Origin: Bugula neritina
Lineage: Eukaryota; Animalia; Bryozoa
NCBI GenBank assembly: GCA_964035545.1
Contig: OZ037772.1
Span: forward strand, 9,603,150 to 9,667,149
Direction: 5' to 3'
Length of the DNA: 64,000 nt
The notes under the pieces were generated by a model. It ran no database searches and was not told the DNA's origin. It worked only from the letters and a program-made list of their open reading frames with translations. This document shows positions 19,940 to 43,520 of the stretch, one piece after another; position 1 is the first letter of the stretch; the number at the start of each line of letters is the position of its first letter. The translations under genes and the position numbers were made by a program.

Positions 19940-22900
19940 ATGGCACTCAATATGGTAGCCGGATGGCAGTATTTGCTCTATGTAATTATTTCCATACTCC
20001 CATTAGCCAGGTATGTGTAACAATTCAGCTATGAATGCTCGTGTCATGATTTCATTTATGAGTTGAAAAGATGTATTTTTCATAATTGCTAATATTTCTA
20101 TCAATGAATCATGAGTATTATAAAATATATATCATTTAGCATCATGTGAAGTATTAAAAAAAATTTAGATAATTATACACAAAGAGTAAGTAACAGGTTA
20201 CAAATATCTTTAGAATTGGTAACTGAAGGCAGCAAATACAGCTACAATGTTATGAAAATGGATGCCTCAACTTATGTACACACACACACTCACACACACA
20301 CACACGCACACACACACACACACACACACGCACACTCACACACTCACACACTCACACACTCACACACTCACACACACACACACGCACACACGCACACACG
20401 CACACACGTACACACACACACACACACACTCACACACACTCACACACACTCACACACACTCACACACACTCACACACACTATATTTTATGTATAATATTA
20501 TTATATTATTATAAATGTACAATATGTATGCATTTCCTCTTTATTCTATTCAGATGTGATGGAACGCTGAATCCTAAGTTACTAGATGTTGATGGTAATA
20601 CATTCTGCTTGCTACTGCTTTATTGTGATTAGAGTCAATAGACTGCCCCTAACTTTTAAATACATAACTGCAATTCATTTTATTTTGCAGCAAATTTGTA
20701 CAGTGCTATATCTGTATTACATATAGTACTATTGCATGCATTGTGTATATTTAGATTGTACATGCATTTTTTCCAACAACCAAAATTTGATCTTTTACTA
20801 CAGTGACAGTTGGTTTTGAAGCAAAGATATTGAATTTATTAACCTGACATATTTTGAAGATATGAAACTAGAAGTTCAACAGTTTTAAAGCCTTTTTTTC
20901 AACAGCCAAAAATTGATATAACTATAAATTACAATGACTGTTGGTTTTAAAGCAAATATTTTGAATCCATTTTGAAATGCATAACTGCAATTTTTTTATT
21001 AGTTTGCAGCAAATATAATAAGCTGTATTGTATATATATTTCCATTATATGCTTTGCATATTTATATTGGATGCATTGTGTATATAATATATCCATTGTA
21101 CATATTGTGTTGCATGTATTTTTAATGTATTGTATCGTAATGGGTATTTCTACATCAAAACATCAATTATTTTATTCTGTTATTTACACTTTGCTGCAAG
21201 AATATGTTTTTTACATTCACTTTTGTCATTAGTTTGAAGTAGACATTTAATCAATGATATAGGGTTAAACTATAGTTTTAATTAAATTAAAAAGCTGCAT
21301 AAGTACAAACCATGTTTCATTGATGGCTCAAAACGTTTTATAGTCAATTACTATACACCTAAAATGAAACTTTAATTCAAATTACATATGCTGTAAATAA
21401 TTGGATGATATTTTGTATGTTCAAAGAGCAAGATCACACCAGCCTATTATAATAATGCATGCATTCAACATTTCGTAATCTTCTACTGTTTTCAACATTT
21501 GCCACAATGTTCATCCAGATGTGATTGTAATACCCCACCACTCTTGTGACATGAGCGATCAGGATGGGTCACATGGCTGCTCTCTAGCATTTGATGATGA
21601 CTCAGCCACATACGCTGACACTGGCAACTCTTCAAATAATTATATTAAGTTAGGTCTTGGCCCATCTCAGGATACCAACCAAACTTATAAGATCATGAAA
21701 GTCCGACTGGAAGCTTCACGGAATCCCTTAAAGCAATGTATGTAACTTAAATTTCATGCTGCATCTTGAATGTTGTTAAAATTATGGTAGTATTTTAGTA
21801 AATACAGTAAATAATTATTTAATCTTTTCATTATGCAATATCTTATCTAATTTTAAAAATAATTTAGTTTTAATTCGTATGATAATGTTTCTGTTACTAG
21901 TAACTCTACTTATTGTTTGCATTTCATATTTTAATGTTTAAAAGAGAGAGTGGTTTAGTGAGCTGAAGAATGTATTAATTTTGTATAATCTTGATTATTG
22001 TCCATGCAAACATACAAAAGCTAAAGATTGCAATTTCATTTTATGTTTATATTTCTATTATAAGAATCATAATTATTTTACATAAAAGTCTTGCGGAATT
22101 GACATTAAAGTCTGAATTATATATTATTTCAAGAAACAAAATTATAATGTGTAATCAATGTTTTAAAGCTTGTTATAAACAAAGAAAGCTATGTTGAATT
22201 TAACAAGGAGTGATTTTTACAATGGCTACATCTTGTAAAAAGCATATTCAAGCACAGCAAAATCATTCTGTTATCATTATACACCAGTAATGAAGAAGTT
22301 TGATTTATATAAAATACTTTTAGCGCTTTATGTTTTCCTGTAGACAATCTCGCACTAGGAAAGCAAACGTCTCAAAGTTCCACAAGATTTGGCAGGTCAT
22401 CAGATCTAGCTGTCAATGGAAAGTTTGATGGCAGCAAGGAATTCACAGCTACTAGGCAGCGGGAAGGTGAATGGTGGAGAGTAGACTTGGAACAAGAATA
22501 CCTGCTAACAAGTTATGCTATTCACTTGGATGAGATTCCACACAATTCATGTATGTGATAATCAAGTTGTGAATTTTTTATCTGAGTCAGTTATTGAGTC
22601 CTCATGTTATACAGAGTGTGAAGTAATTTCATAAAGTATACTAAAGCTTTTGTATCTGGTAGACCAAATCACTAATTTTTAATGGCTATGAAAAACAATT
22701 TGCCCCACTGGGAATTAAACCCGATACTTCTAGCTTGCAAGCAAGTGTGCTACCATTGCACCACCGGACACTGGGTAAACTCAACATTACAACCCACCCA
22801 GTTCTCTAAACTCCAATGGCCTATCTGCTGCTTCTTCAGTTATCAGGCTTCCCTGGCCACTGAACTCCCTCGAAGTACTACTACACTTCACTAAAGGCCG

Positions 22901-43520: not shown

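Follow-up and report, generated by a model that had tools for sequence, protein, structure and literature searches.

A bracket-balanced array of F-type-lectin/discoidin-like half-domain exons in Bugula neritina: probable origin by insertion and a possible nested product

Domain-in-domain nesting is known in metazoan extracellular proteins: the integrin beta subunit nests at two levels, i.e., PSI > hybrid > beta-I, different folds that are each used once. Exons encoding half of a domain are known from Dscam, in which the alternatives, each for half of an Ig domain, are many, mutually similar and mutually exclusive by means of RNA-structure devices; no such device is evident in the array described here. 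Recursive nesting of a single fold is described for SI3 of the cyanobacterial RNA polymerase beta', whose sandwich-barrel hybrid/HABAS motifs are nested up to six levels (PMC13114784). As in the product proposed for the array, one fold is inserted in its own loops within one polypeptide (PMC13114784), and the statement of the original prediction that no example is described therefore does not stand, since the principle is already known. SI3 is nevertheless a bacterial, intron-less, intracellular enzyme module of demonstrated structure, whereas the array is metazoan, of extracellular type and built at intron positions, with two levels and up to six inserts per host as read from its exons. The sperm bindin of Crassostrea gigas is, like the array, a lophotrochozoan series of tandem F-type lectin domains with a mid-domain intron in each; many of its copies lack the His-Arg-Arg triad, and its diversity is due to alternative splicing as well as to recombination within the mid-domain intron (PMC5712786). 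It has 1-5 repeats that alternate, whereas the array has 13+13 half exons in bracket-balanced order and is known from genomic DNA, the single sequencing run recovered for it being DNA-like.

The window (the whole 64 kb stretch of DNA that was analysed) carries on its + strand, from 21519 to 41442, 26 half-domain exons, i.e., 13 N-half (A) and 13 C-half (B) exons (Table 1). The exon calls combine stop-free segments with AG/GT sites in phase 1 and with alignments. All 26 have phase 1-1, a length divisible by 3 and an open frame, and every splice site in the array is GT-AG. From 5' to 3' they read A A B A A B A B B A B A B A B A B B A B A A B A B B. The exon list, the order and the 1-1 phases given in the original prediction were thus reproduced, and every coordinate named there is a real splice site (phase-1 acceptors at 21519, 23788, 27642, 36332, 36705, 37570, 38422 and 41215; donors at 27878 and 41442). 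Boundaries were refined for A05 (start 24463), B15 (start 34868), B25 (start 40528) and A24 (end 40051). At the exon level three host domains are split by complete guests, namely A04[A05 B06 A07 B08]B09, A21[A22 B23 A24 B25]B26 and A01[...]B18. The bracket balance in itself is a weak statistic: given six AA/BB defects, the chance of a balanced order is about 5/64 = 0.08, which is the probability of three AA and three BB (20/64) multiplied by that of never going negative when their numbers are equal (5/20).

Table 1. Position and properties of the half-domain exons of the array and of the MITE
Feature	Description	Position	Strand	Evidence and remarks
A01	N-half, proposed outer host (partner B18)	21519..21737	+	phase 1-1, AG/GT; orthologue in L021
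A02	N-half, guest (with B03)	22344..22550	+	Pfam F5_F8_type_C_2 E 2.6e-4; dN/dS 0.13
B03	C-half	23264..23497	+	dN/dS 0.07
A04	N-half, proposed host (partner B09)	23788..23964	+	leave-one-out 14.3 bits; no orthologue among sister-taxon contigs retrieved
A05	N-half, guest	24463..24687	+	acceptor 24463 restores canonical NVA... start
B06	C-half	24911..25129	+	splice sites/alignment, leave-one-out HMM
A07	N-half, guest	26487..26681	+	splice sites/alignment, leave-one-out HMM
B08	C-half, fast evolving	27230..27463	+	L018 orthologue 60% aa identity, dN/dS 0.82
B09	C-half, proposed closer of host A04	27642..27878	+	178 nt past B08; dN/dS 0.18, no indel
A10	N-half	28062..28274	+	dN/dS 0.12
B11	C-half	28824..29072	+	dN/dS 0.11
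A12	N-half	30514..30696	+	splice sites/alignment, leave-one-out HMM
B13	C-half	31308..31532	+	dN/dS 0.42; leave-one-out 8.3 bits
A14	N-half, divergent	33260..33442	+	dN/dS 0.57; leave-one-out 1.6 bits
B15	C-half	34868..35116	+	acceptor includes first strand; dN/dS 0.19 (34913-35116 part)
A16	N-half	35316..35501	+	dN/dS 0.12; Pfam F5_F8_type_C E 2.3e-4
B17	C-half	35819..36043	+	dN/dS 0.52, dS low
B18	C-half, proposed closer of host A01	36332..36538	+	288 nt past B17; dN/dS 0.20
A19	N-half, plain domain with B20	36705..36902	+	dN/dS 0.27
B20	C-half, plain domain with A19	37570..37797	+	dN/dS 0.11
A21	N-half, proposed host (partner B26)	38422..38622	+	dN/dS 0.26; C-terminal tail QPAAPLAK
A22	N-half, guest	38848..39033	+	225 nt past A21; dN/dS 0.15
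B23	C-half	39368..39595	+	dN/dS 0.10
A24	N-half, guest	39863..40051	+	donor GTAGTC at 40052 is the donor conserved in L019
B25	C-half	40528..40782	+	acceptor 40528 (ttatttttcag) includes first strand
B26	C-half, proposed closer of host A21	41215..41442	+	432 nt past B25; donor GTGAGT
MITE	in A04-A05 intron	24083..24410	.	copies elsewhere in window, terminal inverted repeats

The six introns between AA or BB neighbours (the odd introns) measure 178-606 nt, and the earlier statement that no exon is missing from them holds. A-exon and B-exon HMMs, run on both strands of the whole 64 kb window, found no further significant half-exon; three-frame translation of the six introns gave stops throughout and neither an A nor a B motif. 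Those of 178, 225 and 288 nt have no room for an exon of 180-250 nt plus two introns. The MITE reported within an AA intron is present between A04 and A05. It is about 330 nt long, its terminal inverted repeats measure ~75 nt, and its other copies in the window (17815-18164, 29794-30141 and 36906-37251) are 85-90% identical; a spike of read depth lies above the 36.9 kb copy. As to the ends of the gene, B26 ends in a phase-1 donor, so at least one further exon must follow downstream. Upstream, the search of 15.8-21.5 kb gave no convincing first exon with a signal peptide.

Single A halves match the Pfam profiles F5_F8_type_C (PF00754) and PF22633 over positions ~2-57 with 15-22 bits, below the respective cut-offs of 27.8 and 28.2 bits; such scores are expected because the exons are half domains. 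The B halves have no Pfam match, which again is expected of half domains. The per-exon HMM scan that had been suggested as a check thus gives sub-threshold matches for the A halves and none for the B halves. The closest homologues that are whole domains, i.e., the Watersipora proteins P0015, P0033, P0001 and P0002, exceed both cut-offs. P0015, which was found with the B-exon profile, matches FBP32 (3cqo) as a whole domain (residues 15-155, E 8.5e-17) as well as 1k12, 2j1r and 3le0. By this indirect route, in which the relationship to solved lectins runs through P0015, the array appears to be F-type-lectin/discoidin-like. The solved F-type lectins (FBP32 3cqo, Anguilla agglutinin 1k12 and SpX-1 2j1r) are, among proteins of solved structure, those nearest to the bryozoan family and have in common with the array a motif skeleton, NxAxxGxAxQSS ... 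AxDG ... T ... WWxVDL ... I..V.I in the A part and ...L.S...W...RH.A..S...GL...E.EVYG in the B part.

In the HMMER alignment of the bryozoan homologue with 3cqo, the junction of A and B falls between NRGDCCPE and RL, hence within the RxDxxxxR loop, as originally claimed. [quoted passage not shown] The fucose-binding triad His52/Arg79/Arg86 and the RGDCC motif of CDR4 are not recovered in the array: (i) the conserved Thr is preceded by A, C, Q, S or D in the 13 A exons and by His in none; (ii) no A exon ends in NRxD, i.e., this part of CDR4 is absent; (iii) the Arg equivalent to Arg86 is kept in some B heads, e.g., GRLKS and ERLTL. Canonical fucose binding is thus unlikely to be a property of these domains.

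The halves are not equally recognizable. In leave-one-out HMM searches A01 (1.4 bits) and A14 (1.6 bits) are unrecognizable as A by sequence; they are assigned to A by their position, size, phase and pattern of motifs, and in the case of A01 also by the two-chain fold described below. Among the 13 A exons, the C-terminal tail is longest in the host A21 and second longest in the host A01, and both tails are rich in Pro and Ala. The three host-closing B exons lack both the R-[HY] and the aromatic positions of the motif RHxAx[FY]S, which most guests have; this hints that these exons may be atypical. Identity between AA or BB neighbours is low (A01-A02 16%, A04-A05 13%, A21-A22 24%, B08-B09 14%, B17-B18 19% and B25-B26 20%), no higher than between random pairs, and none is the nearest relative of its neighbour. 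They are thus not recent tandem exon duplicates.

Genomic contigs of a sister taxon (L017-L023), at dS ~0.36 from this genome, keep the order at four of the six odd junctions, the orders kept being A01-A02-B03, B08-B09-A10-B11, B13..B17, B17-B18-A19 and B20-A21-A22-B23-A24. Two scans of metagenome contigs for orthologues of A05 and B26 found none, and the junctions A04-A05 and B25-B26 have no match among the sister-taxon contigs retrieved. The 19 exons compared all have an open frame, the same length and retained AG/GT sites; for B08, of identical length in L018, the AG is moved by a 3-nt indel of the intron. Nucleotide identity of the exons is mostly 87-92%, without indels, and falls to 67.8% for A14, 73.6% for B08 and 75.6% for B13, which evolve fast. 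In the introns identity is 63-83% and indels are frequent, and the odd introns (65-75%) are not unusually conserved. The pooled dN/dS is 0.24 (11 exons) and most exons lie within 0.07-0.27. This includes the host halves B09 (0.18), B18 (0.20), A21 (0.26) and A01 (0.17), the last being 88.6% identical to its L021 orthologue, without indel. The open frames and low dN/dS in the sister taxon indicate that the extra halves are translated and constrained, and since the host and guest halves tested are under purifying selection, none of them is a dead exon. The conserved order shows that selection has kept up the non-alternating arrangement.

These data bear on the reading according to which the odd order has no function, being either an assembly artefact or the state of a decaying gene with dead pseudo-exons. 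The strong divergence of A01 and A14 and the near-neutral evolution of B08 (dN/dS 0.82) would fit it. Against it, the order is identical in the independent contigs of the sister taxon, and the 26 frames are open, with lengths and splice sites kept in the 19 compared exons while the introns are rich in indels. Moreover, Logan contigs of run X1 cross the two BB junctions B17-B18 (35750-36644) and B25-B26 with zero differences; together with the collinear contigs of the sister taxon, this makes an assembly error unlikely. A lack of function appears largely refuted by these comparisons and is considered very improbable.

Plain A/B alternation prevails in paralogous arrays of this genome and in the nearest Watersipora proteins. 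The proposed comparison of exon order thus gives the odd order for the orthologues (four odd junctions out of six) and alternation for the paralogues. Two apparent exceptions were rejected. In a paralogue cluster on contig C4 the seeming BB pairs arise where the HMM missed a diverged A exon (L009, 6037-6294), and alternation is intact there; Watersipora XP_067942844.1 (P0007, A B B A) does not make a clean independent BB case, its B exons being 5.6 kb apart in a gene model of 33.6 kb. Among the 89 matches of the B-exon profile in 1.84 billion representative proteins, none has 13 B stretches. The search for homologous proteins with the A21 ORF gave no match, and when the whole genome was searched with A01 and B18 for plain paralogues that could point to their original partners, only the queries themselves came back.

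The simplest route to a balanced order is probably the insertion of whole A-B units. The gene encodes an array of F-type-lectin-like domains, each divided by a phase-1 intron within the CDR4 loop of the top face and each devoid of the fucose-binding histidine; whole two-exon A-B units would have been copied into introns that lie in the middle of other such domains. As every intron is in phase 1, each insertion would preserve the frame and leave bracket balance automatically. We consider this origin of the order, by copying into mid-domain phase-1 introns, as fairly secure. The repeated insertion of whole units claimed in the original prediction is in this respect supported; its use of the balanced order as an argument for a branched single chain is not, because insertion gives the same balance under any mode of splicing.

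A nested product would follow if all 26 exons were constitutively spliced into a single mRNA. Guest domains would fold independently and, by their adjacent termini, hand the chain back to the loop of the host, while the outer halves A04+B09, A21+B26 and A01+B18 would close over the inserts into complete beta-sandwiches. The extracellular product would be tree-shaped: a host with six inserts (one of which is itself the host of two), a plain domain and a host of two. The inserts would sit on the former sugar-binding face, and the hosts would act as scaffolds presenting bouquets of guest lectins for multivalent binding. The geometry permits it, given a junction in the top CDR4 loop and adjacent termini at the bottom; full inclusion preserves the frame. 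However, some 1,100 residues would separate A01 from B18, and other B halves would compete for A01 in the meantime. That all 26 exons end in one such chain is held tentatively, at somewhat less than an even chance.

The pairing of the host halves A01 and B18 was addressed by two-chain folding with ESMFold2. A01 with B18 reached an ipSAE of 0.58 vs. 0.14 for the best of three controls, the partner B not being discriminated. The pLDDT of A01 is 33-38 when its partner is unrelated and rises to 71-74 when the partner is B18. The A01+B18 runs agree for at least 93% of the contacts, and the pLDDT of the partner is at least 67. In the calibration, 51 of 78 solved complexes attain the two-chain mark, as do 2 of 108 mismatched pairs, and passes at 0.60 or under comprise 5 of the 78 solved complexes and all 4 passing mismatches (of 180). 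These predicted folds give weak support to A01 and B18 folding together as one domain. Two other tests of the pairing were discarded: (i) the mirror-tree/profile-correlation test, with 31 external plain domains, is powerless (ten adjacent positive controls ranked 1-13, mean ~8), and with it the rank 1 obtained for A04-B09; (ii) cysteine parity (one Cys in A04, one in B09) is even in 10 of the 13 domains paired by nesting and odd in three plain ones.

The predicted complementation of A01 and B18 without a covalent link (0.58 vs. 0.14 for the control, a weak result) would also suit an arrangement in which all exons are included and the six extra halves are not nested, i.e., swapped in trans (dimers or polymers), paired in a crossing or permuted way, or used as non-globular spacers. 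The equal number of spare A and B halves agrees with trans pairing, and the lack of R-[HY] and of the aromatics of RHxAx[FY]S in the three host-closing B exons agrees with halves that are not nested. Proximity, however, favors nearest-neighbor (last-in, first-out) pairing in cis, and exposed half-sandwiches are aggregation-prone, yet these halves are conserved at dN/dS ~0.2. This arrangement is thus regarded as unlikely.

Alternative splicing would account for the exon order about as well as nesting. The insertion origin would be the same, with splicing picking one exon of each AA/BB pair, or the host pair vs. its guests. Each isoform would then consist of complete domains, at most about 10, in ordinary alternation. 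With up to 2^6 variants, the locus would generate diversity combinatorially, like the oyster sperm bindin or the half-Ig clusters of Dscam. Skipping of any exon leaves the frame intact, all being in phase 1-1. In the oyster bindin, a mid-domain-intron F-lectin gene, it is alternative splicing that sets the 1-5 repeats (PMC5712786), which makes this explanation a strong one. Alternative exons also undergo purifying selection and the dN/dS data thus fit equally; the fast evolution of some halves (B08 0.82, A14 0.57 and B13 0.42) is that of diversifying recognition proteins, and the alternating paralogues and Watersipora proteins suggest that the usual product of the family is a simple string. 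On the other hand, an identity of 13-24% between neighbors is unlike that of typical mutually exclusive exons. No exclusion device of a known kind is visible in the odd introns, whether steric (178-606 nt), U2/U12 (all GT-AG) or frame-based (lengths divisible by 3), and these introns have no raised conservation that would hint at selector RNA structures. Splicing of this kind is a serious possibility, only slightly less likely than the nested chain.

Should the nested product prove real, a eukaryote would for the first time provide a same-fold matryoshka architecture mediated by introns. Symmetric-phase introns within domains would then allow the repeated pasting of domains into their own copies, so that a linear protein made of repeats becomes branched and multivalent by a topological route undocumented for animal genes, and would pose the folding problem of a half-domain that waits some 1,100 residues for its partner. 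To our knowledge, immune and gamete recognition are almost unstudied in Bryozoa. If the array is instead alternatively spliced, it would be a new combinatorial system of lectin diversity in this group.

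Between 21519 and 41442 of the + strand of the AT-rich window (~33% GC, eukaryotic DNA; contig C8 of a 216-Mb assembly), 26 stop-free blocks are found, each bounded by a phase-1 AG acceptor and a phase-1 GT donor, with a length that is a multiple of three. Four boundaries were revised after the first calling. Thirteen blocks (A, N-terminal halves) have the pattern N[LV]A..G..A.QSS...A.DG...T....WW.VDL....I..V.I and thirteen (B, C-terminal halves) the pattern ..ILLS...P..PSL.S..W......RH.A.[FY]S....GL...E.EVYG; they are numbered in order, from A01 to B26. The order announced in the original prediction, A A B A A B A B B A B A B A B A B B A B A A B A B B, matches this map exactly. 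In a leave-one-out test A01 and A14 obtain 1.4 and 1.6 bits, respectively, and their class A is not assigned by sequence alone; A14 occupies an ordinary alternating position and A01 agrees with the motif skeleton of the A-exon alignment (A3). Read as nested, A01+B18, A04+B09 and A21+B26 would be hosts interrupted by A-B units (guests), and A19+B20 a plain domain.

Alternation is broken at six odd junctions: A01-A02, A04-A05, B08-B09, B17-B18, A21-A22 and B25-B26. Scanned over both strands of the window, HMMs of the 13 A and 13 B exons detect no further half exon; the next best matches have E 0.4-0.7. No A or B motif occurs in the six odd introns (606, 498, 178, 288, 225 and 432 nt) and stops are dense in all three frames of each; three of them are too short for a hidden exon. 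Thus HMM scan and three-frame translation both uphold the claim that no exon is missing there. This scrutiny mattered, since apparent BB pairs in a paralogous cluster on contig C4 were due to a diverged short A exon (L009, 6037-6294) overlooked by the HMM. The A04-A05 intron contains the MITE (~330 nt), which has three further copies in the window. The word depth of the public sequencing run X1 rises from ~100 to ~374,000 across the copy at 36.9 kb, thus this family is extremely abundant in the genome.

Logan contigs of X1, the single public run with the locus, cover 35750-41500 with zero differences, and the B17-B18 and B25-B26 junctions are each bridged by single contigs. Genomic contigs of a sister taxon (JGI samples 3300002729 and 3300003318; Logan runs SRR4020082 and SRR4020083), whose orthologous exons were first seen as small ORFs in the B-exon profile search, are collinear with the window over A01-A02-B03, B08-B09-A10-B11, B13-A14-B15-A16-B17, B17-B18-A19 and B20-A21-A22-B23-A24; conservation thus extends to four of the six odd junctions. 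Exon nucleotide identity is mostly 87-92%, without indels (three exons are faster, see Table), and intron identity is 63-83%, with many indels. Open frame, AG and GT are retained in 19 of 19 comparable exons (B08 and A24 after closer inspection). Pooled dS is 0.36 and pooled dN/dS 0.24 (11 exons); the proposed host halves (A01 0.17, B09 0.18, B18 0.20, A21 0.26) do not differ from the guests in dN/dS. Misassembly, or decay into dead pseudo-exons, is thus effectively excluded by the X1 contigs, the collinearity, the open frames and dN/dS, and is regarded as very improbable. The non-alternating arrangement is confirmed, and is both conserved and subject to purifying selection. The fast exons B08, A14 and B13 keep frame, length and splice sites intact, and their rates could reflect diversifying selection of the oyster-bindin type.

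The B13-A14 intron contains a long microsatellite (at 31.6-32.1 kb of the window) without counterpart in the sister-taxon contig L022, which is ~1.3 kb shorter in this intron region. A short interspersed repeat, also found on the sister-taxon contig L021, resembles, when translated, a tRNA-derived SINE core; ARAGORN detects no intact tRNA in the window.

The A exons match Pfam F5_F8_type_C and PF22633 at profile positions ~2-57, under threshold because each is a half domain. The B-exon profile has only 89 matches among 1.84 billion representative proteins. The top ones come from the bryozoans Watersipora subatra and Bugula neritina and are either uncharacterised or «fucolectin-like»; the nearest of them (P0001 and P0002) are plain ABABAB. 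The single-domain Watersipora protein P0015 is above the Pfam cut-offs for F5_F8_type_C and matches the solved F-type lectin FBP32 (3cqo, E 8.5e-17), as well as 1k12, 2j1r and 3le0. The P0015-3cqo alignment puts the bryozoan A|B intron at NRGDCCPE|RL, i.e., in CDR4, so that the A/B junction lies in the RxD...R surface loop as predicted. CDR4 is a loop of the sugar-binding top face of F-type lectins, while the N-terminal and C-terminal ends together make up a two-stranded sheet at the barrel bottom (PMC5712786); the postulated adjacency of the termini thus holds. Neither the fucose-binding histidine nor the NRxD end is found in any of the 13 A exons of alignment A3. Judged by sequence, the domains appear F-lectin-like without the canonical site.

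The genome contains 94 B-type matches, with large clusters of the two-exon domain family, and the paralogous arrays sampled alternate strictly. With six departures from alternation, an order with equal AA and BB that never goes negative (A opening, B closing a bracket) has a chance of 5/64 (~0.08, own calculation); against chance this statistic is suggestive only. If an entire A-intron-B unit is copied into the intron within another domain, the order is balanced by construction, and the frame is kept because all introns are phase 1. The proposed insertion of A-B units into mid-domain introns is accepted on these grounds as the best account of the origin of the array, and is likely. It must be kept in mind that such balance stems from the mutational mechanism and therefore cannot tell a nested protein from splicing around the odd junctions.

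A branched single-chain product is predicted with a probability somewhat short of even. The following points are counted for it: (i) the fold geometry allows an insert in CDR4; (ii) A21 and A01, both from proposed hosts, have the two longest Pro/Ala-rich tails among A exons, which would act as linkers. Folded as two chains by ESMFold2, A01 + B18 scores 0.58 vs. 0.14 for the best of three controls, i.e., weak support: of 78 solved complexes 51 reach the mark, as do 2 of 108 mismatched pairs, and scores ≤0.60 are those of 5 of the 78 solved complexes vs. all four passing mismatches (of 180). Contact agreement between runs is at least 93%, partner pLDDT at least 67, and the pLDDT of A01, 33-38 beside unrelated partners, reaches 71-74 with B18. 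The model supports A01 as a competent N-half; which family member is its partner is not told by a two-chain fold. Other pairing modes, e.g., trans complementation, are considered unlikely. Cysteine parity in A04/B09 is real but weak. All three closing B exons carry an aliphatic residue (I/V) in place of the F/Y of most guests, and are devoid of the R-[HY] of RHxAx[FY]S; these shared features are not significant once multiple columns are allowed for. The mirror-tree test of A-B pairing had no power on its own positive controls. Against nesting, a host half would have to remain unpaired during the synthesis of ~1,100 residues.

Alternative splicing around the odd junctions is credible, at a probability only slightly lower than that of the branched single chain. 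In the nearest known gene of this kind, oyster sperm bindin, the F-lectin repeats have an intron in mid-domain, inside which recombination shuffles the halves, and the repeat number is set by alternative splicing (PMC5712786); in Watersipora and in the paralogous arrays of this genome, the normal products of the family are plain strings in which A and B alternate. However, AA and BB neighbours have 13-24% identity and are in no case the nearest relative of each other, in contrast to mutually exclusive exons that arose by tandem duplication. None of the known exclusion devices is apparent: every intron is GT-AG, none is shorter than 178 nt, and the frame survives inclusion; the conservation of the odd introns is not unusual.

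Upstream of the array, the second matrixin exon is closed by a strong phase-1 donor (GTGAGA at 15672); the A01 acceptor, likewise phase 1, lies 5.8 kb downstream, and a splice between the two would keep the frame. On this sequence basis, the array of lectin halves could belong to a metalloprotease gene, as its C-terminal part. The terminal-looking exon, whose acceptor is in phase 1, would be compatible with the B26 donor, which lies 17.5 kb upstream.

Table. Features of the window and paralogous clusters
Feature	Coordinates	Strand	Remarks
CDP-alcohol phosphatidyltransferase ORF	3888-4403	-	PF01066, E 8e-12; unrelated gene, opposite strand
Long microsatellites	13590-13860, 20227-20511, 31602-32064, 48623-49171, 50436-50760		TA, CA/TG, CT-rich and trinucleotide types
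Matrixin (Peptidase_M10) catalytic domain	14492-14740, 15467-15671	+	Two exons with zinc motif
Short interspersed repeat	15377-15481, 22691-22789, 22911-23012		~100 nt
MITE family	17815-18164, 24083-24410, 29794-30141, 36906-37251		~330-350 nt; ~75-nt terminal inverted repeats; copies 85-90% identical
Fast exon B08	27230-27463	+	nt identity 73.6%; dN 0.31; dN/dS 0.82
Fast exon B13	31308-31532	+	nt identity 75.6%; dN 0.24; dN/dS 0.42
Fast exon A14	33260-33442	+	nt identity 67.8%; dN 0.38; dN/dS 0.57
Cys-rich, EGF-like ORF	57880-58206		
Terminal-looking exon	58966-59243	+	Transmembrane helix VALVIVALVVACFVV, basic stop-transfer RRSKARNR, Ser-rich tail, stop codon
Paralogous clusters (L001-L016)	C5:1.23-1.34 Mb, C5:0.46-0.52 Mb, C4:19.95-20.03 Mb, C3:7.6-8.1 Mb		Two-exon domain family

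The statement that no such nested protein was known does not hold for the principle: in cyanobacterial RNA polymerase, recursive nesting of one fold has been described in the SI3 insertion (PMC13114784). The bryozoan case, if true, would differ from SI3 in being eukaryotic, intron-mediated and extracellular; a nested product would be no new category, yet would be striking on these three counts.
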